Positions 30,818-56,117 of a stretch of 64,000 bases of DNA are shown piece after piece. The stretch's first letter is position 1. Each line of letters starts with the position of its first letter. This stretch comes from Takakia lepidozioides (Eukaryota > Plantae > Bryophyta): contig CM060734.1 in assembly GCA_030704615.1 (NCBI GenBank), forward strand, positions 33,480,001-33,544,000, given 5' to 3'. The notes beneath the pieces were generated by a model. That model saw only the letters and a program-made list of their open reading frames with translations, searched no databases and was not told the origin of the DNA. Position numbers and translations under genes: made by a program.

Positions 30818-34605
<3,788 letters not shown>

Positions 34606-38670: not shown

Positions 38671-39739
38671 AAAGCAAGCATAATTACGCTTATTACGGAA
38701 TTATGTTTGATTGTGAGTAAGTCATTGTTAATGTTCATAATTTCCATGATAGTTAAATTCCACTCATCTTCCAATTCCATTCATTTTTGCTGGTCTGTAA
38801 AGTTTTGTGTTTGGCTGCTCCTATGCAAGAGACCATTGGGTTCGACCCCACTTTTCCCGGCTAATCAAAGCAATGACTTCATTTCAAGCCCACCCCTATC
38901 TTTTGAGCTACCAATGTACGCAGAGGCATTTGCAAGACTCATGTCTTTGCAAGGGACCTGTAGCCCTTCCAGGGCCAGCCTAGGGAAAAAACGTCGTGAT
39001 TATAGGGCTAGGATGTTTGTTGATGACGCTGCTATGAGAGTTGAGCATCTCTTATGGGACTAGATCTTCTAAAGAATAAAAATGAGTTTGATCCCTCCCA
39101 ATCATTGCATGTGTTCGTGACAACCTCTTCAACTGCAATATCGCGAACACCTCAAGTTGTCATCAATCTTGATGATTACATTGACCTGTCTGATGAGACT
39201 CCCAATAGTACTAATGCACCTCATCTACAGTCACTGCCCAACTTTCAAGAGATAGGAAATACAGGAGTGAAACGGAAGTGACAGCGAGAACTCAATCCAA
39301 TGGTAGAAGCCCTAAACAAAGATAATTCTTCTATTGTGGAAGCTTTGACGAAACAAACAAAAATGCACATTGAAGCCGAAAATGCAACAATGGAGATTGA
39401 GAACCATAAGATCAAAACTACCAAAAAGCTTGAACAACGTCGTATTCAGCATGATAAAGACATGGAGAAGAAGAACTTGTCTGTGCCACCAATTACAAAC
39501 ACGGACCTCATAAATGTTTTATCTTGTCTGTGTGATACCATAGAAGTAGGTGCAACAGCCAAGAAGAAGCAATGAGCTTCGGGCTGAACTGAGGTCTCAG
39601 TGGTATGTATCGACTTAGATGCATCCATCTGCCTTAATAATTGATAGCTCTTAAAGGCTTCATCTCACAATCTGAAGTGACATGACAACAAACTAAAAAA
39701 AGCTCCTGCACAAAAAAATAAAAAAATAAAAAATTGGCT

Positions 39740-40150
39740 AATTTTTGGGGTCGCATTTATTTTTTATTTTTTAATAGGTGCGACCGCCAGAATTGGTGAT
39801 CGTATTAAACCTGAACTTCATTAGTTCTGTATGGCTCTATATCTTCAATGCGGTGTCTCAACGTTGGTTTTCTTATCTGTCATTTGGGTGGGATCACTTG
39901 CAGGCCCCTGCGTGGCGGGGGTGTCCGCCAAAATCTTGCGGTCGTATGCTATTTTTAAATTACGTGTAATTATCAAAATTCAGCGGTAGCATGTAATTTT
40001 TTTATGAAAAAAATAAGTACGACCGGCTAAATTCGACGGTCGTCTGTAATTTAATTTTTCAAAAAACAATATAACCGCCAATTCTGGCGGTCGCACATAT
40101 TAACAAAATAAAAAATTACATGCGATCGGCAGTCGTACCAATTTTTGAGA
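39740..40150. repeat. Array of palindromic GCGACCGCC-N5/7-GGCGGTCGC units with AT-rich spacers
   Basis: Degenerate units seen directly; colinear with 50870-51150. Confidence 0.75.
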
Positions 40151-41630
40151 AAAAAATGATAAAAAAAGTTACTCGTAATCAAAGTTCAGATAGCGGATCG
40201 GAAAAGAGATGGGCGCTCCACATTTTTCGCTACACGTCTGACGCTGGTCTCAACGCGCGAAGACAACAGACACCTCCTCCCCTTCGTTTTGCACCTCAAG
40301 TTAATGCTTCTCTGTTTGTTGCACAACAAAGACTGAAGTCTTATCCCCTCAACCTTTCTCTATCATGGTTTTCTGGAGGGTTTTTTGATAAACTGCCGTC
40401 TTTTGGTGTTTTTGTCATTTTTCATCCTGTGTGAAGCACTATCTATCTGTTTAGACGGCATTGGTGACATTACTGACAGTATTCAAGTTTCACATGTGAC
40501 ATAACTGTGTGGTGCTTTGGCACTCATTCTTCTCTCCCCTCATTCATCCTTGCTTTTAAAAATTGTCTAAAACTGCCTAAATCTGTCTAAGATGGCTTCT
40601 TTCGTCTCTTGTTGTTCTAACACAAAGGACCCAAAATGATTTTTGTAATATAATGTTATGCTACTAAAGCAATTTTTTCACTATTCCTATAGTGAAAGCA
40701 ACAACCATAATGTATTGTATGTAACTATAAAAATAATTGATGATAAACTATTCTTGGCCTCTTTGGGATGATTTAGAAAGTTTTTTTTTTAATAAAAATA
40801 TATATTTTATGTATTGTACTACATGAAAAGTATTTAAATTTTCTCTTGACAACATACACATAATGTTCTATGTGACTAAGGTGGTATTTACATAACGCTT
40901 CAAATGAGTATTACGATACCTATACCACTTTGATAGTAATTATCAATTTTTATTGGTACCTCTCTAATAAATGTACTGCACTACATTAATAATAAAATAC
41001 TCATGGAGTAAGTTCTTAGATTTTTTTAAATTATTAAAGTGATCTGTAAAATCTTATATTTTTTACATTATCTAATGAAATTAGAGCCTCATTACCTACG
41101 ATTGATTCAATTTACTGAAAAAGTTGTTGGCATACTAAGCAAATAACCGGTACAGTGGTTTATCCCTTTACAAAAACTTGAAAAAAATGATCATATATTT
41201 TATGTGATAATACTTAAAACCTTCAATCTGTCTATGTATGGTAGCTGGAGTATCCATAAAATTTATGTATAGCTCTCACTAGACACGTATATCTAACCCC
41301 TAAAGTTTAATAAATTTGCTATACCAACAAATAAGTCATTTCACATCCCCCATTGTTTGTGGCCTAGTTGCACAAAATGATGTGACGTGACGCTAACACG
41401 TTACCGTCACATCCGAAGTCCCTACATAACGTCACCTCCAAAACTAGTTTTACGTTGTTTAATGTTTTTAAAAAATTAACTATTTTATTACATAGTTTAC
41501 CATAATAACACGTAAGCCATCATGTCAAGTATAGTGGTCCAAAAATTTTAAAAACTATTTTCAAAACATTGGATCGTTGGATCGTTGGATCTAATGGTAC
41601 TAAATTTTAAAGAATTTACTTAATAAATTC

Positions 41631-42496
41631 GGGACCGCCAGCTTTGGCAGCTGAATTTTGAAAAGAAAAACTAATAAATCGGGACCGCTAGCTCTGGCAG
41701 TCCCAAAATTTAGTAAATCGAGACCATCAACTCTGGCGGTCCTAATTTTAAAGAAATGATTTAATAAATTCAGGACCCTAAGCTCTACCAGGCATTTTTC
41801 TTCAAAAACGTATCTAATAAAATGGGACCGCCAGCTTTGGCGGCCCCCCCCCCCCCCCCCCCCCCTCCCCCTTAAAAATCCGGACCGCCAGCTCTGGCGG
41901 TAATTTTTTTTTTTTTTTTTAAGGATCAAATTGCATGCATGCCCGATTAATTTTTTTAATTTTATGGATACAATTGGGACCATCAGCTTTTAGCAATCCC
42001 ATTTTTATTGAAAAATAAAATAAAGACCGCCAGCTTTGTCTGTACCGGATTTAATAAATTAATTAATTAATTAAGACCGTCATCTCTAACGGTCCCAAAT
42101 TTTAAAAACAAATTCAATTTTTTTTTAAAAATCAGGACGGTCACCTTTGGTAGCCCGAATTTAATGTAGTAAAAATTAAGAAGATCGGACCTCTACCTTT
42201 GGTGGTCCCCGAATTTAACAAGAAAAATGAACATTAAAAACCGGGACCGCCACCTTTGGCAGTTTCGAATTTAATTTTTAAAAAAATTAAAAATTAAAAA
42301 TAAAATAAAAGATTAGTCCACTATCTCTAGCAGTTGCGTTTTAATTTAAAAAATTAAGATTTTGAAATCTAGGGACTGCTACCTTTGGCGGTCCCGAGTT
42401 TAGAAAAATATTTGATAAATCGGGACCACCAGCTCTGGAGGTCCCGATTTTTAATAAAATATTTAATAGATCTGGACTGGTAGCTTTTGCGGTGTC
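41631..42496. repeat. Array of ~16 palindromic GGGACCGCCAGCTYTGGCGGTCCC units with AT-rich spacers
   Basis: Units at ~41631, 41681, 41720, 41772, 41824, 41882, 41977, 42024, 42074, 42133, 42187, 42243, 42315, 42372, 42422, 42474. Confidence 0.85.
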
Positions 42497-43319
42497 AAAT
42501 TATCAAGCTGAGAAATTATCAGAGCTCACTTGGCAATTTATATTTTTTGGTATAAAACTAACGTGACATAGGCCCACATCAGTTTCAGATCCGAGATGAT
42601 CTGACGCGACTTGACATCAAGGTTAACCATTACCAACGTTCTATACTGCCAAGAGGTGTAGTCACCACTTTGCCACCATAAAATACTTCAACGACCTGTT
42701 GTATGTCATTTTTCTTTTTGTGTGAATCATATTTTTTGCGTTAATCCCATTTCTTGTCTATGCCCTTATCCTTTTTGTGTAACCACATCGGGCTTCTCGA
42801 CAGTCTCTTCTGTAGGCACTGAGGGGTGTAGAGATTCAATCTTGCAATGGGACAGCTCCAGGACAGTTTCTTCTACATGTAATGAGTCAGATTCTGTGTC
42901 AATCTATGTCACAATCTCTTTGAAAGCATTGAGGGGTGTGCAGGCTCAATCTTGCAATTAAACAGCTTATGGACAGTCTCTTCTAAATGTAGTGAGTTAG
43001 ATTTTATGTCACTTCGTATTACAGTCTCTTTTCAAGGCACTGATGAGTCAAATTTTGTGTTATTATCACATAGTTCTTGTTCTTTCTGTTGCTCTACAAA
43101 TAGCCTTCGCATAATTTTGACAATCTCACCAGGCTTTTCTTGGATTACAGAGGGTGAGAACCACTTGGACGAGAGCTGCAAACAATTTGGTCACACTGAG
43201 AGTAAGGGCCCAACACCAACAACCAGAAAACAATGATTACCAGTCAAGAGTAAGCCTAAGAAACACTTCAAACACGTTTAGTTTACAAAATTTTGAGATG
43301 GCTTGGTAAGAGAGGTAAG

Positions 43320-46300
43320 TGTCGTGACATATCTTTTCATGTACTCCGTCACGAACCACCCATATGTATTACTCTCGTCTAGGTACATCGCAGGAAGTGA
43401 GCCTGAGAAGCTTATTGAGCTTTGTAGCATTGAGTCATTTTCCCACATAGAGTTCTTCTAGCAACCTACAAAAATTGTCATACATGCCCATAAGGTCAGT
43501 GTTCAGATGACACTAGTTTGGATGAAAAGCTGCAAGTGTCAAGAACGAGAACATAACTGAACACAAACAAGATATCAGACTAGAGGTACAAGACTAGGCA
43601 AGAAGTCAAGGTTGGCATGGCCGTATGCACGATGAGTAAATAGGAATCAAGGCGATCTTTATAACAATAAACAAGTGTACAAGATATTGGAACACGACTT
43701 GAATACTGGAATGCTGGAAACTGGACTGAATTACCAGATACTGGAAACTGGGCTAGGGTACTGGGAATTGGAAACAAGAGTAGCTTGAACTGGTGTTGGC
43801 GAGATTGAAGAGTGTCCAGTCTCGCCTCCTATATATACTGGCTACTAAGAAGCTTCCCTAATAAGCTTCCCCTATGGAGGTTTCTTGCTGGAGAAATTTC
43901 CAAGATTAAACAAATGTTTCTTGATGGAGAAGCTTCCTTAAACAAATGAGATATTTTGATGGAGAAGTTTCTTCCAAATGAAGCTTCCTGAGCAGTTTCC
44001 CAAGTTACTTTTGGTAATTTGATAAACTCCCGGTAACTTGGTAAGTAATGATAAATCATGGTAGATCATGATAAATCACGGTAAGTCATTGTAACTTTTG
44101 ATAACTTGATAACTTGGTAACTTCTGATATTTACTCTTGGTAAGTTCCTCTGGGCTATGTCCGTGACATCACCCCCTCCTCTAACGCCGAATTCCTCGAG
44201 GAGCGATAAAATCTTGGACTTGCTTAGAGTTGGAAAAAATCCAAAATCCGGCGAATGGTACTTGTCCAGTATTCGGCTCTTCGTTCTTGATTCAAATGAT
44301 TTATAGGTCCCTGCAACCATCGATAATGTCCAACACCTTGAACTTGGGACCACGCAGTGATTTGAGCATTCTGATTCTCGAAGCTGCCTTCAAACATGAT
44401 TTCGTTGCCCTCTGCGTCCGAAACCTCAACCTCCAACAGAATTATCAGACTTCGAGTAGGCTCCACTTGCCGTCGTACGGGGTCCAGATGAGGAAGTACG
44501 CGTCGCATTGGTGGCCCATCGTCTCAAGAGCGTCGGCGTGATGTTGAAGGTCGTGAGAGTCGGAACGGCTGATCTGGTAGCTGGGTAAGCGACAACTCAA
44601 ATGTATCTGGTTCCTGTGACTCCATACTGCCAATACAAGATGCAAGAGTGCTGGAAGTGTAGCTATATATACTGATGTGTGGTGTTCCTCCCTCCTTAGC
44701 GTGTATCAGGTACATTGAATGTACCTTGAAGCTAACTTGGCTGACATCATCATTGTGACGTCTTATTGACGTGTAGCTCGGGGCTTAGCTAAATATCGTT
44801 GATGAAACTCTTGGACTTTGTCAGATGCATTGGCGAGATTGGATGAAAGTTCCCACGTTCGTTCGTTGATGTCGTAGCCTTTCCAATGTACGAAATATTC
44901 AAGACGTTTATACTTGATGCGAGAATCTAAGACTTCATCGACTTCATACTCAATTTCCTGATTGACTTCGATTGGTGGAGGTGGTACGGAGACTCTCCCT
45001 AGAATATTCGATAGATGATACAACTCCAATAATGAAACATGAAAGAATGGATGGATGCGCATACTTCGTGGGAGTTCAATCCGAAAACTGACCGGATTTA
45101 TTTGTCGAATAATTTTGAATGGTCCCAGGCGTTGATAATCCAACTTCATTGATGGTCGCAAGGTTTGTATGTCCCGTCGAAGAAGCCACACACGATCTCC
45201 GACCTTAAACTGGGGTTGGAGTTGACGACGTTGATCTACATACTCATTGTATTATTTTTTAGCTCCTGCGAGGTGGAATGTAAGCTCTTTGTGAATCATA
45301 GCAAGATGAGAAACAAGGTTTTCTACAGGGTTTCCAACAGTCTTCATGTGGAAAGGGTTTGCTCGACGATAATGACCATAATTGGAGAAAAATGAAGTTT
45401 GTTTAGTCGAAGAATGTATAATGTTGTTGTAGGCAAACTCAGCCAATGACTGAAGGTCCGTCCAATTATCTTGATGATAATTTATCGTACAACGAAGATA
45501 CTGTTCCAAAATCTGGTTTACACGTTCGGTTTGACCATCAGTCTGTGGATGATTAGCTGTAGAGAGATTGATCTTAGTATCCAATATGTGAAATAATCCC
45601 CTTCCAGAAATTTGATATGAACTGTGGTCCTCGATCAGATACGATGTCCTTTGGGAATCCATGAATGCAGTACATATTATTGAAAAAGAGTCTAGCAGTT
45701 TCCTCGCTGGTAACCGTCTTATTACATGGAATAAAATGTGTCATCTTCGTAAAACGATCTATAATAACAAGGATTGAATCGGTGGTCTTGGAAATTGGAA
45801 GGTCCGTAATAAAGTCCATGATAGACACGGACGACCATGGACCCTTGGGAATGGGTAATGGTTGAAGAATGCCGTAAGGTCGATGTCGTGGTCCATTCGC
45901 TCTAGCACACGTGTCGCAAGATTTTATAAATTCTTTCACGAGTTTCCACATCTGTGGCTACCAATAGTCCCTGGATATCAATTTCATTGTTTTGCTGAAG
46001 CCGAAATGTCCTGCAGCCGGAAGATCATGACATGTTTGAAGAATTCGAAGTCGTTTGTAACATGTGGATTATTTCGAGGTCGATTTAATTGACTTCGTAG
46101 TGTCGTGGCAAATTGGTCGCTCTTCAGTGCTTCCTGGATCTCTTTTATGATCTCTACATTATCATAGGTGGACATTGATAGCATATTCACTTGGAGATTT
46201 GCTGGTTTCAAGATGATGGATTTCTATTGGTCAAAAGTTGTATCCCCTTCTTTTGGCGCAAGATACGATCGTCGAGAAAGAACATCTGGTTTTCTTTGAA

Positions 46301-48578
46301 GATGTCCGGGACGGTAGGTAATAACAAAATCAAACCTTGCTAGTGACATATTCTATCTCGCTTGACGTCAATTCAAAACCCGAGCACTCATAAAATACTC
46401 GAGGTTTTTGTGATCGGTATAGACTGTGACTTGATGTATAGATGATGTCATTCCTCAAAAGCATCAATAATCGCTAGAAGTTCTTTGTCATGGATTTCAT
46501 AATTGATCTCCGCAGCGAAAAATTTGCGAGAACGAAAACCAACAGGGTGAAGTCGGCCATCTGTACCGTATTCAGAGAATACCACGCCAAGTGCAAAGTC
46601 CGATGCATCTGCTTCCAAAAAGAATGATTTAGATGGGTCTGCTTGTACTAGTATTGGAGCCGTTGTGAATGTCTACTTCAGCCTTTCAAATGTTTGGTCA
46701 GCCTTCTCGTCTCATACAAATTTGTCCTTCCATGTGAGTCGTGTCAATGGTGCAGCAATTTTGGAGTAGTCCTTGATGAAGATTCTATAAAAATTTGCAA
46801 ATCCTAGAAAACATTGTACATCTCGGACCGAAGTTGGTTTAATTCACTCGATGATGGTTTGTATTTTCTTCTGATCCATAAAGATTCATTTGTCGGAAAT
46901 AATGTAGCCCAAAAATTCGACTTCAGATTGGTGGAAAAGACATTTTTTCAACTAGGATCTCATACTTGTTCGGTAACTTAAAAATGGCATGTACAACACA
47001 CTCCCAAAGTTTCAAATCAATCTAAAATATAGTCATTTTTCCCTCAATTTATCAAGGACAAGGCATACATGACGACCATGTTCTTCTTCATTCTATGAAA
47101 ATATCAAAATGTCGTCCAAATAGATGACTACAAAGTCATCTAAAAATTCTTGAAAGATGTCATTTATCATGTGTTGAAAAATTGCTGGAGCATTTGTAAG
47201 ACCGAAAGGCATAGCACTGTATTCGAAATGTCCGTACCTTGTGCGAAAAACAGTCTTCTATTCGTCTCATTTTCTTATTCGTACAAGGTTGTAAGCTCCT
47301 CTCAAGTCGATCTTTGTGAAAAAATTTGCTCGTCCAAGTTGCTTGAGGAGTCCCGAAATCAGCAGTAGTGGGTAACGATTTTTATAGTGACTTTGTTGAG
47401 CCCACGATAGTCCACACACATGCGTAACGATCCGTCCTTCTTCTTCACAAATAAGATACGTGCTCTCGCGGGTGATTTCGAATGTCGAATGAAATTCTTT
47501 GACAAATTTTCATCAATGTATTCGGGTAAAGCAGCTAGCTCCGTCTGAGATAAATTTTAGATCGGGCCGAATGGTGGTTGAGCTTTTTTTTGCAAATCAA
47601 TTGCACAATCATGTTTTGGTAACATGTCTGCATTTTTCTTCTCGAAGACATCATTGAAATCTTGATATTGAGTGGGTAATGTCGAAGTACCTTGGTCTCT
47701 TAAGGTTTTGATCGGAGTCGCATAAAGTGCAAATGTCGCGTCTTTTTTCATAGCTTTCATGAAGGCTCTAGCTCCAAGAGACGGGGATTGAATACCTTTG
47801 GTACATTTTTATCTTGCCAAAAATTTTCATGATCGCGCTCCAATGTCAGGATTATGAATCGGACAGCATCAATCTACATAAGATCATTACCGGATGTCTG
47901 ATGGATCGTTGTGTTTGGTGTCGTAGTAGGAGCGGCATGGTGCGTCGTCGACCATCCAGATCGCTTCTCTTGACGTCTTTCAAACAAACGATTATCGCAT
48001 GCAATGATTTGGGTGATGAATTCACTCAGTATACTCACGTTTGGCATTGTCAGTAACAAATCTTTTGCATCCTCTTTTAGGCCACATCAAAACTGACTAA
48101 TGAGACTCTTCTCATTCCAGTCGAAGTCGCACGCAAGTTGTCGAAATTCGGCAGCATAAACGGAAGCTGGACGTGCTCATTGTCGAAGATTTCGCATCTT
48201 TGTCTCTGCAACTCTCTCTCTATCATTCTCTCCAAACGTTGCAGTGAACTCAGACATGAAGCTTCAAAATTGTATAGTAAATACGAATTTTTCTCTAATA
48301 GCGGTGCAAACCAAGATAGGGCAGTGCCGATTAGAATGGTGCCTACAAATCTCACTTGAATACCTTCATCAGGGTAACGTTGTGGATGTAGTCGTAGGAA
48401 CAATCGTACTTGTTGAACAAAACCGCGAAATCTTGATCTTGTCTCATCAAATTTTTCGGGCATGCTGACATTTGGTTCCATTGTAATCTGTTGAAGATTT
48501 GTAACTTCCGGTAACATGGTAATTTGGTAACTTCTGGTATTTACTCCTGGTAAGTTCCTCTGGGCTATATCCGTGACA
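43320..48578 (-). mobile_element. Degenerate Ty3/gypsy chromovirus (Tcn1-like) LTR retrotransposon
   Basis: 3' LTR 43320-44168 with PPT (agaggagggggtga) next to it. Only ~80 bp of the 5' LTR remain (to 48578). Flanks gtaag/gcaag. Gag MPEKFD.TRSRFRGFVQQV, RT ([29 protein letters not shown]), RNase H (EADASDFALG), integrase (MDFITDLP, SDRGPQF, HPQTDGQTERVNQ), GPF motif and chromodomain EYEVDEVLDSR...YFVHWKGY...TWE. Protease region deleted. Confidence 0.93.
44224..44625 (-). pseudogene. Extra ORF of unknown function between gypsy pol and PPT (~133 codons, one internal TGA)
   Basis: MESQEPDTFEL...RRRS*DDGPPMRRVLPHL...RRILDFFQL read in a single frame. Confidence 0.5.
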
Positions 48579-49929
48579 GCAAGGCTCATACACTACAGAA
48601 AGACTTACTTTTTTAAGGTGTCATGGATGGTCATGTGGGTACCATTTGGAGAGTTCAAATGTAGTGTTTGGGGTGATTTCATGTTGATGACAACTACACT
48701 CCAGTGTTTACTACATTCAAGACAACCACATCAAAATCAAGAGGGGGCCAAGCGATGAGATCGTAATGAGCAATTGGAAAGGCCAAAAGTAACGTACTAG
48801 TAAGATGGATGCTTAGTTCACTCAAGCTCTACTCTCCAATACATCAATGTACAAAGTATCTAACAAAATGAAGAAGAAATGTACTTACTCTTTGTTGATG
48901 GGGATCAGTAGGTGATTTTTCCTAGTGTTGGGCACACCGCTTGATTCCATTGTAGCCTTCTAATTCAAGCTTTGTGAAAAAAAAACGCGGCTATATACCT
49001 CACATTTCATGCTTTCATTAAAGCCTAAAGTATGATACTTACTTGGAGTAGAATTCCATGAGTTTGTCGGTCATCCAATCACTTTGTTCAGCACATAAGA
49101 GGTCTATTGGCTGAAGCACTGTTAAGTTACTACCCCAAGCATATCTCAAGTTGACATCTCCTCTTCAATATCCTCCTTTTCGAGATGCTCTGAAGGGTGG
49201 ATCTTCCTGAACTCAAAAGTCTTTATCCTCAAAAGATTACAATGTACATTGAGTCAAACGAGCAATAGATGATGACAGTGACATTCTTCTCAAACATTTT
49301 CTTTTCTTTCTTTCTTTTGTTTTCTCATCTTTAGATTTATTGTCTGTACGTCAATGTACAACCCTGGTTTGTGATGATTCTTTGTCATTATTTAGAAAGA
49401 GCAAGATGCAATCTGTAATGTAAACTTCATTGACCTTGAATATATGGTAGTATCCCTTATGAATGAATATCCCTACAATGGTATGTATCTTTTCTTGAAA
49501 ATTTTATTACAACTTCACTCAGCCCTGTCTCATTATGCTGTAGGATTGCACAATGTGACCTTATCGCAAGATCTGAATTACAGATAAATATACCCAACAT
49601 AAAACAAACATTAGCCGCCTAACTTCATTGTGATGTCAATATTTCATTACAAAACTAAATTTAATTTCAAATAGTTTATGATTACCTTATGTACATCAAG
49701 GTTTTCTATATTAGAGATGTCAGACGCGTCAGACCATACGCAAACATGGCCTACGTCACGTCAATTTTAGGTGTGGATAATGTAATTTCCGGAGGGGTGA
49801 AAAATGTGATACGTAAGCGACCCATGCGTAGGACTCGGATTGCTGGGCAATGGCCCTCTATTCAATTCTTCTCCCATCATAACCGTTTAGATATGGAGTG
49901 AGGATGCGGACGTGGTGGATGAATCTCAC

Positions 49930-50600
49930 CTAGTGCTTAATCTGGACATGGATATAATTCAAGCTCAAACGTAAGCCGTAGTGGAGCAAGGTATCTTGAT
50001 CCATTTCCCTGGATGAGCACGAGACAAAACTTTGCATCTCCATTATATCTAATTTGACAGAAAATGCAGCTAAGGCCTTGAAGTTCAATGTGCGGCGCTC
50101 CAAATTCAGAGTGCACATTTTTCCCTAGTCCTCCAAGTAGGGACACAAAGGTGGTGTTACCTGCAAGCCCTGTACCTCCCCGAGAATTATTTACGCTCAC
50201 TCCCCGAGATTGGTACCCATTTCGAGGTATACATTGGATCCATGGGAGTTTTTGAAAATGAAGATTTAGATATTCTAATCATCGACCTCCTCTTCAATGA
50301 CATTGAAGAATGGGGTATCCCCCGCATTGTCGTGATGATGCCTGAGAATGTCTCCATCGAAGGTTATTTGAAGTTGCCTACTTTAGACAAATCTTTTATT
50401 TCTATCGTCGTCCAAGAATAAATGCTTAGTATCATCTGTCACTTTTGTCATTGTGAAGATCACATAAAAGTTAATTGTCCTACCTTCTTGAAGTCTAGAA
50501 TGGAAAAAGAGACCCTTTCAAATGTTACTAAGAAAGCGAATTGGGTGTAGGTTCAGGCTAGAGACTCTGCTGCATCCTCGAGAAAGCGGTGAGACCCCTA
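49930..50600 (+). mobile_element. L1-type LINE ORF1 remnant
   Basis: Zinc knuckle CHFCHCEDHIKVNC (CX2CX4HX4C) at 50437-50478; stops present. Confidence 0.5.
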
Positions 50601-50719
50601 CAAAGAGGGTCTCATCTGATGTGACACCTGTGCAATAGTGACATTTTTAGCACAGCCACATCATATTGACTGATATATTGGCATATTATTCAACATCATA
50701 GTTAATTAAAAATTTCAAA

Positions 50720-51565
50720 AATAATAACTGCGACTTCCATATATAAAGAGCCGCATCTAATTAAAAATTTGGCTGTCATATATAATTTTCTTAAAACAAT
50801 ATGTGCGACCACTTAAATTCGGTAGTCGCATAATATTTTTTATTTAATAATATGTAAGACTGCCAAAATCCTACGGTCGCACGTTTAAAAATAAATAAAA
50901 AATAAATGCGACCGCCAAAATTCGACAGTAGCATGTAATTTATTTTGGAAAAACAAACGCGATTGCCCAAATTCGGCGATCGCATGAAAATATTTTTTAC
51001 ATAATAAGTTTGGCCACCAAAATTCAGCAATCACGTGTAGTTCAGTTTTTCAAAAAATTAGTACGATCGTTAATTATGGCGGTCGCACATATATAAATAT
51101 AAAAAAAAATCACATGCGACCGCCAACATTGGCTATCGCACCAATTTTTGAAAAAGACAACAAAAATATTTATTTATTTTTTAAAATGGGTGCGACTGCT
51201 AATTATGCTGGTCTCACCTATTTAAAAAATAAAACTTTCATGCAACCCTTGCAGTGACACCAAATTTTTTTTTTAATGTGTTTTTTATTTTTTTTTGGTG
51301 AAAATGGATCCGACCGCCAATTTTAGGCATATATTTTAAAAAATAAAAAAATTTCATATGATTGCCAGACTAGCAATCGCATCCACTTTTAGAAAAGAAT
51401 AAAAAGTAATTTTGTTACCAAAATTTGGGTTGACTGCCAATTATGGCGGTTGCACTTTATTTTATTTTTTAAAAAATATTAATTTCTTTAAAAAACTGAA
51501 AAATCAAAATTTGTAGCTTATCAAAAATATTGAATTATCAAGCGACCGCCAATATTGGCAGTCAC
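50720..51565. repeat. Palindromic GCGACCGCC/GGCGGTCGC array immediately 5' of the transposase relic
   Basis: Multiple units (e.g. 50908, 51074, 51116, 51190, 51310, 51431, 51542) separated by A/T runs. Confidence 0.8.
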
Positions 51566-51618
51566 ATATAGTCAAGGAAATTTCTACTAAGGTGAAGTTT
51601 CTTCCTTGTGATGATAGC

Positions 51619-54600
51619 ATGAGCAAAGACATACATGAAGAAGAGGGGCTGGTGCAAAACTCGGATAGGCTGAAAAGCAAGTTGGCCAAATATGCAGATT
51701 TTGAGAAGTGACAAAAAGAGATTAGGGGCGTTCGAAGGAAATTGAGGGCACAAGGTCGTTTTGATGATGTTGAGCTCATGACAAAAGATGTGGAAGGAAA
51801 TGTGTTGTTTCAGCTCTGGTATGATGTATGTCAAGAGGTTTATGCCCGAACAGGAAAGAGCAAACCTTATGAGGCATGTCAGAATTATCTCAGGTCTCAT
51901 GTGAAGTCTGATGGGCACCAAATGACGTACCAAAAGCGCTATGGGAAGGGGAAAGATGATCATATTGTGAGGCCTCCAAATGAACAGGAAATCTTGGCTG
52001 CCAACAAGGAAATAGTCAAAGAGGTCATAGAGGAGGTTGATAGCTTTTGCGTAGACAATCTAGGTTCAGCTTTTGAGATTGTGGAGGCAACAATTGGGGA
52101 TTACTCAAAATTGGGATCTATGAGATTAAAGTGTATGACCAATTCAAAGTGGATAGTCATGTTCTCTAAGACAGGTTCTCTTATGTTTTCATTGACAAAG
52201 CATGTCAAAGGAAAAACTCATTTGGTTGCGGGGACATGCAAGCTGAAAGATGTTGATGTAGATCTGAAAAAACGAGTTGGGAGGCCTCCAAAGTCTTCTA
52301 TTGCCCATGATAGAAAGCACAGGGATCTAAGTTCTTTCTTGATCAGCCAACCTATCATCAGATTTTCAAATTATATCACTCCAGCCACTGCAACAAACAT
52401 TTCATTCTCATCTATTATGGAGAAGAGTGATGTTTCAACACGTGACTTGTCACCGGACATCAACATTGAAGATGCATCCCCCATTTGACAACCACATGAA
52501 GGGTCCCAACGCAACAATAGGAAGTCGATGCTATGTTGGGGCCTATGGGACGAGTGGTGGGAGTACAATCGTGACAAGGTCAATCTCAAACCATTTCTTG
52601 AAGACACCAAGAAACAATTGGTATGCCGAACCTCTAACCAATGTAACCATCATTATTAACCATCGCTCGCATGTGATTGCTGGTACATTCTGACATAATG
52701 ACTGTTTGAGAATATCACTGGATGGATAACCTTTTCCAGCCATAAGATGTTATTTTTGTTCTTCAATTCCATCTGAAAGAGACTTCACAATGAAGATTTA
52801 TAGAGAGAGAATCATTGCTACTCAATTAAGAGGAGAGAGGGACACGAGAAAAAGAAGAAAGTTGTATTATCTTGGCAATTCAAAAATTATCAATCAAGTG
52901 ATCAAGGACAAGAAAGAGTTGAGAGAATTGAGGTTGACGTTGTGGGAAACAAGAACGAGAGTAGCGAGTCTTTCTGTGCGTTGTAGGGGCTTGAAGGAGG
53001 CTACTGCAGAGGCTATTGGAAGAGGAAATGTTCACAAATTCTGTCGGGACATTATGCATGCGCATAGGTCGAAGAATTTTGAAGGGAGAGAGAATTTATG
53101 GGATTTTCTTGTGGACATTGGCAAGAACATGGGCAGATCTGGAAAATGGAAGAGGTATAGCGATAGCAGAAAGATCATGTTTGAAACTATTCAACTTTGG
53201 GGTGGTCCAAAATTGTCTCATTTTTTGGCAACCAATTTGGGTGGTCCCGCACTTGATACTATAAAGCGGTCCTTGAGGAAAACAATGACATATAGGGTGG
53301 GTGAAAGGCCTGATGTGTTTCAACATGTTGCTGAAATATATCGATATGCAATTGAGAGTATGGCCCTTCTATTGGCAACTGTCCCTGTCATGATTGCTGA
53401 AGATGAGACCGTGGTGAAACGATTGGTTAAATGAGTTGCTAGGGATGATATTCTTTTGGGATTTTGCGGGGTTCGAGAAAATCATGTTTGTGTGTCAGAC
53501 TTTGTAGTTGAAATAGGAGAGGGTGAAAGAGCATTTGGCAAGATTGTAGATGCCTTCAAAGACAACACGATAGCTCATTATGCTAGAGTGTTGATAGCAA
53601 ATCATTTGCATATTAGTTTGCCTCGATTGGTTGTTGTTGTGCATCTTACATGCAATAGGTTTGACAATGAGTTCGTGAGACGTCAATGGGAGAAAATGAG
53701 GGTGTTGTGGAATAAACATGTGAGAAGGGTAGTTGGACCAATAATTGGTCATACTTTAGATGGTGATAGTCGAAGGATGAAGCTAACGTTGGAAGACTAT
53801 GACAATGGGGCTGGAGAAAGATTATTCATCCCTTGGGAAGACTAGTTATTTTCAGCAAAGGTGTTGGGGAATGGTGGAGATATCTATGGGCTACACGACC
53901 AAGACTTCATTCACAATGGCAAGAAGTTGTGAATCCATTGGACAACCCTTCACGACAACTAATCTTAGGTAAGGAACTTGCAACCTTGAACCACGTGCTT
54001 TTGGTTTATCAAACGTTTTCAAGTGATAAACATAGACTCCAAGAAGGTGATGTCAAAAAGGAAGACCGGCAAAATTGGGGGGCAGCTCAACGCATAGTTT
54101 CTCGCAAAGTGCAAGCATGCTTGAAAGAGTTGCAATCAAGTCGTAACCATCGCAAGGAGAGGACTAAAGGGACTGAAATATATCTACATGTTGTTTCATG
54201 CTACATAGATATTTTTCCTTCTTCTCACCTATCTTTGGGTGGAAGGGTACGATCTGCAACCAAAATATCGTTCTTTTTCAGATTACGGAAGCTATGGATA
54301 CATCATCATGCACTCTACAATCTGAAAGCTTACTTCATCAGCAGGGAGGCCTACTTGGACTTGCAAGTTTCATGTCATTATGTGGTTCTCCTCATCAAGC
54401 TCTTCAAAAATAAGTTCAGCCATTTGCAAGTTCCTTTGAGCATTGTCGGATCTGATATTTGTGAGATTTTTTTTCAGCAAAATTGGAGGCATGTTGCGAA
54501 ATGAGAAGACGTATGATGGCTGCGATCTCATTGAAAGTATTGATGCACTAACACGAATTTCGGAGTTTGAGGCAAAACCAAAGGGGCCAAGGTTTGCGAG

Positions 54601-55237
54601 AGCACACAAGAAACAAGAGCATATTTGGTTCACGTTGGAGAAAGATAACTCCATCCCTTTTGCTGACCTTGGTGATTTCTCTTCTGTTCAGTCAGATTAT
54701 TGCAGTGTTGAGGCTTTGAAATCTGGTTTTCTTGAAGCCCAAGACCTATGTAGCAGCTTGGGAATGAAACCGTGATGTGACCAGATCTGAATGGTGGAAT
54801 CAACCATGGAATATCGAAAAGAAGAGAGAGGTTCAGCTTTTCAAATGCATGCAGGAGGATGCCAGGATGGTGACATTGTTATTGATGATCTTTGTTTGGA
54901 AGTTGATGGAGAAACCCATGTCGAACCTGAAACTATGTAAGATCCTTCTTTAAGTGCAATGGAGGATATTTCGGACCCTTTGCAGGTGCATACAGAGGAT
55001 ATTATTGTTCAAAGCGAATTTCGGGATACCTTGGATGCCCTTATTGATGAGCAAGAAGGAGAGGAAGAATATGAGAAATCACCTATCATTTCATTTGTCA
55101 CAGTCGATGGAAAGGCTATTTTCAAGAGTACCTTGGTTAGCCAATTAAATGGCAACCCCACTCTTTCCAAAGATAGGTTAACACGAGTTCGAAGTGGAAT
55201 TTCACTTTGCAAAGAGAAAAATTCTAGCCACATTTAA
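51619..55237 (+). pseudogene. Decayed large DDE-type DNA transposase, P-element/THAP9-like motif order
   Basis: Intronless coding relic (ORF pieces 51742-52488, 52790-53434, 53456-53845, 53833-54504, 54443-54775, 54959-55237) joined by premature stops and frameshifts. Candidate motifs AEDET, GHTLDGDSRR, DQDFIHNGKK (DxxH) and GSDICEIFFSKIG. N-terminal C/H zinc-finger-like patterns. Confidence 0.65.
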
Positions 55238-55664
55238 AAAGACCATATCACGTGCGTGCATTAGTCAATAAAAAATACCCTTGTATATAGGTTACTTCAT
55301 GAATTTATCATATGTATACATATATTTTAAATTTTATTAAACCCCCTAAAGTATTTATATAAAATAATATTTTAATGAATAACAACACCCTGTTCATGTG
55401 TTGATTCAGAATATAATAAACCCTTTATTTATGTATAATTTTTAATACAAAATTGTGATAAAAGTTTTACATCAGATTTAAAAAATATTTAAAATAACTT
55501 GTATAACAAATAAAAATTAGTGTCAAATTTATTTTCCATTGATAAAATTGTCAAAAACTGTTTTATTATTTGGATCGAGCTTATACCTATTAGAGGCTGC
55601 ATCATACTTTAAAAAAGCTAATGCTATGATAGACTCTAAATCAACCATCATAAGAGTGCACCCC

Positions 55665-56117
55665 CCAGGGATTTCAACATGGTTGACAATCCTTTGGACA
55701 GATCTGAAGTAGCCAATCACAACCTTTTTCTGCTGGAAAGAGACTCCTGGGATGCTTTGTGCCATTACGTTGGTTTGATTGATGTGTCCCCTCCCTCTGG
55801 CCAAGATTTGAAATTCACTTGGTCAAATAATAGGGCTCCTCCCAATCTTAGGATGGCCAGACTTGATAGATTCTACTGTTCTTTTTGCTATCTCTATTTG
55901 ATCTAAGTCCTTGCCTTCTGGCTCCATATTGCCGGACTTTGATCATGCTGCCATCTCCTTTTCTTTTGTCACCCCTAGAGCAAAAATTAAAGGCAAGGGT
56001 TATTTTAGGCTCAACCCAACTTCAGCTGCTTTACGTTGCTTTAGCACCGATACTTTCGATTATGCTTCCAATTCGACCGAGACAGTTGCCATCAGAATAT
56101 TCTGTCCATATTTCTAA
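55665..56117 (+). mobile_element. L1-type LINE ORF2 endonuclease remnant
   Basis: GDFNMVDNPLDR, FTWSNNR...MARLDRFY, DFDHAAI...YFRLN motifs. Confidence 0.7.

Follow-up and report, generated by a model that had tools for sequence, protein, structure and literature searches.

The interval from 51,619 to 55,237 on the + strand of the stretch of Takakia lepidozioides DNA analyzed here (64,000 nucleotides, hereafter the window) is, with a probability that we put at about 0.75, a dead copy, free of introns, of a transposase gene from a cut-and-paste DNA transposon family that represents a deeply divergent branch of the P superfamily or a sister to it. The initial annotation had proposed the relic of a P-like DDE transposon in a land-plant genome, and homology, fold and conserved catalytic residues bear this out; the decay of the window copy is equally plain. 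Placement of the family rests on Pfam, the PDB, the ESM Atlas and published sets of Kolobok sequences, with published values used for Dada and for the Drosophila buzzatii P element.

The coding relic

The reading path of this P-fold DDE transposase pseudogene runs from an ATG at 51,619 to a terminal stop at 55,235–55,237 on the + strand, without introns, and comprises 1,205 codons interrupted by nine internal stops (at 51,709, 52,486, 52,691, 52,727, 53,432, 53,843, 54,773, 54,788 and 54,938) and three frameshifts (near 52,609, 53,928 and 54,475). A broken intronless relic of ~1,150 codons had been annotated across 50,620–55,660. The long frame with its scattered stops and frameshifts is real, but only 51,619–55,237 is coding; in the earlier interval the first 0.9 kb is taken up by a non-coding array of palindromes, and the last 0.4 kb by AT-rich DNA in which no feature was detected. 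No second coding copy was found in the 64-kb window, and the copy present is probably an inert pseudogene with no present function.

A word-indexed search with a 234-aa piece of the relic, in which candidates were limited to 129–410 aa, gave no match. An exhaustive HMMER search with that piece returned at least 246 relatives (best E 1.6e-49), and a profile search added 193 more, clusters of 100–300 members among them; named sources are Calypogeia fissa, Riccia sorocarpa, Amphiura, Mytilus and Clytia. The relic aligns collinearly, at 25–58% identity, with intact intronless proteins of ~1,000–1,500 aa, its separate pieces with proteins of 800–1,500 aa, and at 57 of the 64 near-invariant positions that it covers it still has the family residue. 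As the 234-aa piece has 246 relatives and all pieces are collinear with full-length proteins, a long coding relic is far beyond chance, and the collinear alignment to intact intronless members of so large a family upholds the core reading of a P-like DDE relic.

Catalytic core, predicted fold and relation to other superfamilies

Conservation was counted in an alignment of 92 homologs, whose numbering is used here. The first catalytic aspartate lies in AEDET (53,396–53,410, + strand, as are all motifs of the gene; D268, 91/91), and the second in DGDSRR (53,759–53,776; family SDGDxRR; D388 88/88, D390 87/88), the relic carrying Leu in place of the invariant Ser that precedes this motif. DQDFIHNGKK (53,897–53,926, with DQDFIH itself at 53,897–53,914) holds the D(2)H signature (D441 88/89, H444 86/89, KK 86/89), and the third catalytic residue, E629 (70/71), lies in GSDICEIFF/FFSKIG (54,448–54,487), a motif interrupted by a frameshift. 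Across the homologs D268, D388/D390, D441xxH444 and E629 are 97–100% conserved, and all catalytic residues are retained in the relic. The counts for D268, D388 and E629 answer the test of a conserved acidic triad that the initial annotation had set, and the motif order that it gave, of zinc-finger-like segments, a coiled coil (here a helical stretch), AEDET, DGDSRR, DQDFIHNGKK and GSDICEIFF/FFSKIG, is present in full. The D(2)H signature is common to the P, hAT, Kolobok, MuDR and Dada superfamilies and so is not exclusive to P (PMC9587614). Within the RNase H domain there is also a near-invariant Cys/His/Cys/Cys set (GFCG..H.C ... TCNRF, 53,459–53,662; C289 90/91, H296 89/90, C298 90/90, C352 89/92), a pattern of residues that possibly forms a structural zinc site.

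The predicted structure of the family clearly matches the Drosophila P element transposase (PDB 6P5A/6PE2), with the P-type overall fold including the large insertion domain within the RNase H fold. In the model that holds the catalytic residues (pLDDT 93.5), D1 is on strand beta-1, D2 follows beta-4, and E is carried by the helix that comes behind the all-helical insertion domain. A helix-turn-helix-like segment (YSDSRK...IKRSL, 53,156–53,275) precedes the catalytic core and lies in the part of the model, from residue 137, that matches the P element transposase. The modeled insertion domain superposes on the GTP-binding insertion domain of the P transposase, and the family may use GTP as well. 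The Pfam-labelled neighbors in the ESM Atlas are all P/THAP9 clusters (TM 0.59–0.74), and a separate language-model lead agrees with P/THAP9. A second tier of structural matches is formed by Transib/RAG1 and hAT (Hermes), which, like the family, have an RNase H-fold DDE domain with an insertion domain.

By sequence the family stands apart. Pfam gave no match to seven relic pieces at E≤1, to nine long relatives at E≤0.01, or to 20 family members even at E≤5, so that the curated P/THAP9 models PF12017, PF21787, PF21788 and PF21789 do not recognize it, and phmmer and profile searches of PDB sequences found nothing, the family profile missing even the P element transposase (6P5A). The N-terminus differs as well. 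The DNA-binding-like region at 51,817–52,293 follows the family pattern (alignment A3) of two C-x2-C...H-x5-H modules, the first at 51,817–51,918 with its first Cys lost and the second at 52,126–52,221, followed by a GRPPK AT-hook-like motif (52,279–52,293), and it is 42–45% identical to the upstream ORF of a young relative, L007. A THAP9-like N-terminus had been proposed and was not recovered: THAP (PF05485) matched none of 20 family members, neither THAP nor BED was matched by Pfam in this region, and nothing significant came up when the N-terminal model (pLDDT 73) was compared by fold with the PDB. The P superfamily has a THAP (C2CH) domain at this end, whereas the family has CCHH fingers and the AT-hook-like motif instead.

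The enzyme follows the architecture of the P element transposase: behind an N-terminal DNA-binding region come a helical oligomerization-like stretch, then a helix-turn-helix, and finally a DDE catalytic domain of RNase H fold that a large all-helical insertion domain divides. Intact members would be expected to excise and integrate in the manner of P elements by metal-dependent DDE chemistry, and may need a nucleotide as cofactor in that insertion domain.

In the Drosophila buzzatii P element, residues D313, D386 and E610, with H422, give spacings of 224 (D2–E) and 188 (H–E), to which the 241 and 185 of the family come close, in favor of P; the D1–D2 spacing of 73, against 120 in the family, speaks the other way (PMC3698922). 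Between its first two catalytic Asp residues the family has ~50 extra residues that bear the conserved C/H/C/C set, and it differs from the P superfamily (P, 1360, Galileo and vertebrate THAP9) further in SDGDxRR at D2 and in having bryophytes among its hosts; P elements have 31-bp-type terminal inverted repeats (TIRs) and 7–8-bp target-site duplications (TSDs), neither of which was found in the family copies examined. It is conceivable, though unlikely, that we are dealing with a separate unnamed lineage of superfamily level that shares an ancestor and fold with P but is not P proper, with a DNA-binding domain of its own, an additional zinc site and perhaps other kinds of ends. The failure of every Pfam P model and of the profile to connect the two, a structural identity to the P transposase of just 14–15%, the CCHH fingers in the place of THAP, a C/H/C/C set and a 120-residue D1–D2 spacing not described for P, the lack of P-type TIRs and TSDs in the copies examined, and closest Atlas clusters that are unnamed would all fit such a lineage.

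To our knowledge neither Kolobok nor Dada has a solved structure, so the ranking of PDB matches cannot by itself exclude them. That the family belongs to Kolobok is nevertheless very improbable. The two share the C/DxxH signature, a broad eukaryotic host range (animals, fungi and algae for Kolobok, overlapping that of the family) and the lack of a Pfam model, and some Kolobok lineages have SDGD at D2, a string found 12 times in the supplementary sequence sets, as well as a CCHC finger that directly follows D1 (PMC9587614). Against this, none of the strings AEDET, GFCG, TCNRF/CNRF, NPLH, DRQNW, HNHKK, DQDY, DGDSRR and SDGDSRR occurs in the Kolobok sequences (1.13 M characters), where EDET is matched once, away from D1, and the Pfam-labelled Atlas neighbors point to P/THAP9 without exception. 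The Kolobok signatures, with D1 in a DxxW/Y context (DCAW/MDASY) and E in an N.NE..N context (NFNEAFN), are not found in the family, which has AEDET and GxDxxExxFS; Kolobok elements also have a TTAA TSD and 5'-RR...YY-3' termini, whereas no termini were definable in the family copies examined. Dada likewise resembles the family in its DDE domain with DxxH, long proteins and poor Pfam coverage, but is described with a D-68-D-176-E core, an N-terminal CCCC and a C-terminal CCHC finger, genes that mostly contain introns, and small-RNA genes as targets (PMC3706591), where in the family the spacing is D-120-D-241-E, the fingers are CCHH and the genes lack introns.

Copies, ends and flanking DNA

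In the tree (LG+G4, quick search) the relic and all labelled liverwort copies fall in one fully supported clade, apart from the animal clade. This relic clade has 14 sequences, the unlabelled ones among them coming from ENA ERZ25073677, ERZ25073694 and ERZ24794493 and from JGI 33000568xx samples. The grouping with the liverwort copies argues against recent horizontal transfer, and the horizontal acquisition raised in the initial annotation finds no support; the lineage has probably long been resident in bryophytes. The family occurs in liverworts and animals, and probably in fungi. The Calypogeia copies are mutually divergent (65–78%), too far apart for ends to be defined from them; a Calypogeia protein of 1,529 aa is an intact member. 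P0190 (1,307 aa), a member of the relic's clade, occurs on 12 contigs, which represent one locus in many samples.

Ends were sought in several sets of copies. In the window no TIR was found between 50.5–51.7 kb and 55.2–55.8 kb, where AT-rich chance matches alone appeared, and no TSD is visible; the AT-rich tail after the stop (55,238–55,639, 29% GC) yielded no repeat, TIR or motif. No TIR or TSD was seen in liverwort loci or in a metagenomic representative, and the loci L001 and L002 showed no TIR, subterminal repeats or TSD. The young family L007/L008/L009 (89% identical) has edges without TIR or TSD, and two marine copies (L019 and L021, 99% identical) show no boundary within >6 kb and no TIR or TSD. 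A metagenome scan gave one 1.4-kb contig. Presence of a TIR or TSD in some copy had been set beforehand as a test, and none was seen among copies of which few are full-length with flanks.

This lack of ends would accord with the bryophyte lineage being a transposase-derived host gene family, comparable to vertebrate THAP9, and the window copy being a pseudogenized duplicate rather than an insertion, as would the span of the sequence shared by the young family, from only ~20 nt before the ATG to ~240 nt past the stop, and P0190, intact and identical at the same single locus in at least nine samples. Such an origin is nonetheless highly unlikely, given that L007, L008 and L009/L010 have unrelated flanks and have decayed independently, that one liverwort genome holds three divergent copies, of which one, L003, is broken beyond its called ORF of 738 aa, that clusters at 90% identity have 28–43 members in the relic's clade and 100–306 in the animal clade, and that the catalytic residues are all conserved in a family whose window copy lies among transposon debris.

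The palindrome array noted before the relic is real. It occupies ~50,790–51,570, is AT-rich with a ~51-nt period, consists of degenerate ~26-nt palindromes (TGCGAYCGCCAA-NN-TTGGCGRTCGCA), and ends ~50 nt upstream of the transposase ATG; TGCGACCGCCAA, two mismatches at most being allowed, was counted 19 times where 2.7 would be expected. Related arrays lie at 39.7–40.1 and 41.6–42.5 kb, the copy at 39,737–40,152 being 70–86% similar, and all 14 occurrences of the array core GACCGCCA in the window fall within the three arrays, with none next to a relative's copy. Membership of the array in the element was therefore rejected as unsupported, as it is found elsewhere in the window and is missing next to every relative examined. 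Gypsy LTRs that could show the arrays to have once been contiguous were not found. The surroundings of the window copy as a whole are a transposon graveyard.

The relic had also been described as an insertion separating LINE ORF1 from ORF2. On the right, 55,640–56,114 (+ strand; RDFN...FTWSNN...RLDRF...FDH) lies outside the P-like gene and looks like the C-terminal part of a LINE-like EEP/APE-type endonuclease, with Atlas features at 0.94 to Exo_endo_phos clusters as a language-model lead only. It reads RDFN and not GDFN, matches nothing in Pfam or among PDB sequences, and has no reverse transcriptase downstream. On the left, the CCHC knuckle at 50,437–50,478 is weak (E 0.14). The N-terminal part of the endonuclease, presumably ~190 residues judging from L1 endonucleases, is absent from the window, so the arrangement is not a clean insertion between the two LINE ORFs, and no TSD marks one.

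A P-fold family in bryophytes

P-type elements have been recorded from insects, Ciona, vertebrates and Trichomonas (PMC3698922). A survey from 2025 that covered 1,007 plant genomes and relied on Pfam models to look for P reported recently active elements from only seven superfamilies, none of them P (PMC12973397). As the family escapes every Pfam model, screens of this kind would miss it. The family is large, unnamed and outside the standard domain databases. A more far-reaching and less likely reading is that bryophytes carry an old resident lineage of P-fold DDE transposases, unseen by curated libraries, and that this lineage and its relatives in animals and probably fungi make up a sister superfamily of P not described before, characterized by CCHH fingers, a zinc site inside the RNase H domain and unconventional ends without obvious TIRs. 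Some members, such as the fixed and intact P0190, may have been domesticated. If confirmed, the family would extend P-fold transposases to land plants (one moss and at least two liverworts). Work on the evolution of the P/THAP9 architecture would then also have hundreds of divergent sequences and a high-confidence model to draw on, among them a variant whose DNA-binding domain differs and which probably has an additional zinc site. A profile built from the family (alignment A2) would turn many animal, fungal and bryophyte 'hypothetical proteins' into recognized transposase genes.

The relic and its protein family

The relic is a dead transposase gene copy, and the family to which it belongs is a divergent, Pfam-invisible group of P-fold DDE transposases hosted by bryophytes, animals and probably fungi; the core idea of the initial annotation, a relic of a P-like DDE transposase, is judged right. 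Three-frame translation of the forward strand shows a chain of long segments without stops from 50,600 to 55,700. The reading path, set by mapping intact relatives back onto the window, starts at the ATG at 51,619 (frame coordinate mod 3 = 1), passes to mod 3 = 2 near 52,609, back to mod 3 = 1 near 53,928 and once more to mod 3 = 2 near 54,475; with its terminal stop at 55,235, it comprises 1,205 codons, nine internal stops and three frameshifts. The motifs listed in the initial annotation are all present in the order stated, and its interval of 50,620–55,660 does contain the coding relic, but the first 0.9 kb is a non-coding array and the last 0.4 kb is AT-rich DNA. Of the near-invariant family positions covered, the relic keeps 57 of 64, including D268, D388, D390, D441, H444, K447/K448, E629 and C289/H296/C298/C352 (numbering of the intact member P0039), and has lost seven (G185W, P336H, S387L, R394M, R493K, V565I and W572R).

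Neither Pfam, searched with every relic piece, nor PDB sequence searches with the relic gave a match. An exhaustive HMMER search with a 234-aa relic piece ending in AEDET identified 246 relatives (E below 1e-10 for 79), and a profile search added 193. All relic pieces are collinear with proteins of 800–1,500 aa at 25–47% identity, and many relatives represent 90%-identity clusters of 100–306 members each, copy numbers that are typical of transposons. Named hosts are two liverworts (Calypogeia fissa and Riccia sorocarpa), a brittle star (Amphiura), a mussel (Mytilus) and a hydrozoan (Clytia). Pfam searches with nine long family members and with 20 members at E ≤ 5 returned no consistent family match. 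As the liverwort gene P0199 (1,529 aa) and P0190 (1,307 aa) are single-exon, the family is intronless, in agreement with the initial annotation. Two relatives, P0265 and P0251, carry additional precomputed Pfam domains, Peptidase_C48 (ULP protease) and DDE_Tnp_4, which may be fusions or adjacent genes joined by gene calling; Peptidase_C48 has been seen fused to plant Mutator/CACTA transposases.

Fold, catalytic residues and rival superfamilies

An AlphaFold2 model of P0039 residues 130–760, built from an input alignment of 92 rows, had a mean pLDDT of 93.5 and a pTM of 0.92. In the Foldseek comparison that the initial annotation had proposed, its top PDB match was the Drosophila P element transposase (E 2.5e-12, TM 0.66–0.70 on target), ranked above RAG1 (1e-4), Transib (1.4e-3) and Hermes (0.03). 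In the ESM Atlas the closest entry is an unnamed basidiomycete cluster (TM 0.86), and the neighbours with Pfam labels are all P/THAP9: a rotifer 'THAP9-like' protein (0.74), P transposase clusters (0.61–0.65) and vertebrate THAP9 (0.59). Atlas neighbours also add Basidiomycota and Mucoromycota as probable hosts.

The acidic triad is kept among the 92 homologs (D268 in 91/91, D388 in 88/88 and E629 in 70/71), as are D390 (87/88), D441 (88/89), H444 (86/89) and K447 and K448 (86/89 each). In the model the RNase H sheet carries D268 on its first strand, D388 comes directly after strand four, and E629 sits on the helix behind the helical insertion, a predicted arrangement that is the canonical DDE placement. 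From D2 to E the family spacing is 241 residues and from H to E 185, compared with 224 and 188 in the D. buzzatii P element (D313/D386/E610, H422; PMC3698922), whereas D1 to D2 is longer, 120 versus 73 residues. Alignment of the family puts the near-invariant Cys289/His296/Cys298/Cys352 (window 53,459–53,662) within this extra segment, in the N-terminal half of the RNase H domain; the P element transposase lacks the segment, and the four residues possibly form a structural zinc site.

Compared with the ORF that lies upstream in the young relative L007, the N-terminal region of the relic has 42–45% identity. In an alignment of nine members this region contains two modules, C-x2-C-x20-24-H-x5-6-H and C-x2-C/D-x17-H-x5-H, with GRxGRP and CWGLW after them. 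The modules have a CCHH pattern, whereas that of THAP is C2CH; THAP and BED models did not match the 20 family members searched, and a structure search with the N-terminal model (pLDDT 73) gave no significant match, so the 'THAP9-like' N-terminus of the initial annotation is not upheld. The family agrees with the P superfamily in fold, triad and D(2)H, but not in sequence models or THAP.

Among other superfamilies, some Kolobok lineages share SDGD at D2 and carry a finger behind D1. Published Kolobok alignments, however, show DCAW/MDASY at D1 and NFNEAFN at E, and nine other near-invariant family strings occur nowhere in 1.13 M characters of Kolobok sequences. Dada differs in spacing (D-68-D-176-E versus D-120-D-241-E), in fingers (CCCC and CCHC versus CCHH) and in having introns (PMC3706591).

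Ends, mobility and surrounding DNA

No TIR or TSD was seen at the window copy, at the loci L001 and L002 or among three divergent Calypogeia copies. The nearest family, the P0209 cluster (28 members), is 56% identical to the relic, and its copies with unrelated flanks are ~89% identical to one another. Sequence shared by these young copies begins ~20 nt ahead of the ATG and runs to ~240 nt past the stop codon (L007:235/L008:7426; L008:11965/L009:1966), with no inverted repeat or duplication seen at the edges, which is unusual for a cut-and-paste element. Two marine copies (L019/L021) are 99% identical across >6 kb without a boundary being reached, and a metagenome scan yielded one short contig. 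Because no TIR/TSD or defined ends were found, we infer mobility from the copy number and from the occurrence of decayed copies at dispersed sites. About 380 nt downstream of the intact Calypogeia gene, L002:10,971–11,215 holds four 49-nt repeats in tandem. P0190, an intact member of the bryophyte-type clade, recurs identically with the same neighbours in at least nine metagenome samples (L011–L018, JGI samples 33000568xx), reflecting either one abundant organism repeatedly sampled or a fixed, possibly domesticated copy.

The AT-rich palindrome array at 50.8–51.6 kb (19 motif matches versus 2.7 expected) ends ~50 nt before the ATG. A related array at 39,737–40,152 is 70–86% similar with the same core, and a variant array at 41,600–42,500 has the variant palindromes GGGACCGCCAGC...GGCGGTCCC (GGGACCGCCAGCTTTGGCGGTCCC); both arrays are AT-rich with GC-rich palindromes spaced ~50 nt, and neither adjoins a P-like ORF. 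All 14 occurrences of the core GACCGCCA in the window fall within the three arrays. Because similar arrays occur elsewhere in the window and the core was never found beside relatives' copies, we leave the array unassigned to the P-like gene, and the array part of the initial annotation is not supported.

Nor is the proposed LINE insertion supported by a clean signature: the right flank reads RDFN, not GDFN, and looks like an EEP-type endonuclease fragment with no reverse transcriptase behind it, and the left zinc knuckle is a candidate. Elsewhere, a WRKY-domain ORF (E 4.5e-18) followed directly by a 370-aa ORF without a Pfam match (32,914–34,602, forward strand) probably represents what is left of a WRKY/GCM-type Mutator-like transposase, and the reverse strand at 44,766–48,589 holds a Ty3/gypsy chromovirus remnant (SH3_Tf2-1 and chromodomain, integrase core and gag-like DUF4939 ORFs) for which no LTR pair was detected.

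Phylogeny and origin

The phylogeny that the initial annotation had also proposed is a maximum likelihood tree of 96 sequences (LG+G4, quick search, SH-aLRT; all rows kept; midpoint for drawing only), for which the breaks in the relic and in two broken loci were bridged with X. The relic falls in a 14-member clade (support 100) with all three Calypogeia copies, L005 and nine unlabelled sequences, and the labelled animal sequences, four in number, all belong to a different clade of 56 members (support 100), a topology that lends no support to the possible horizontal acquisition first suggested. Identity within the bryophyte-containing clade is 31–58%, indicating deep divergence. Although 10 of the 14 members of the relic's clade carry no taxon, the clade split and this divergence give no sign of recent transfer from animals and fit a long residence of the family in bryophytes.
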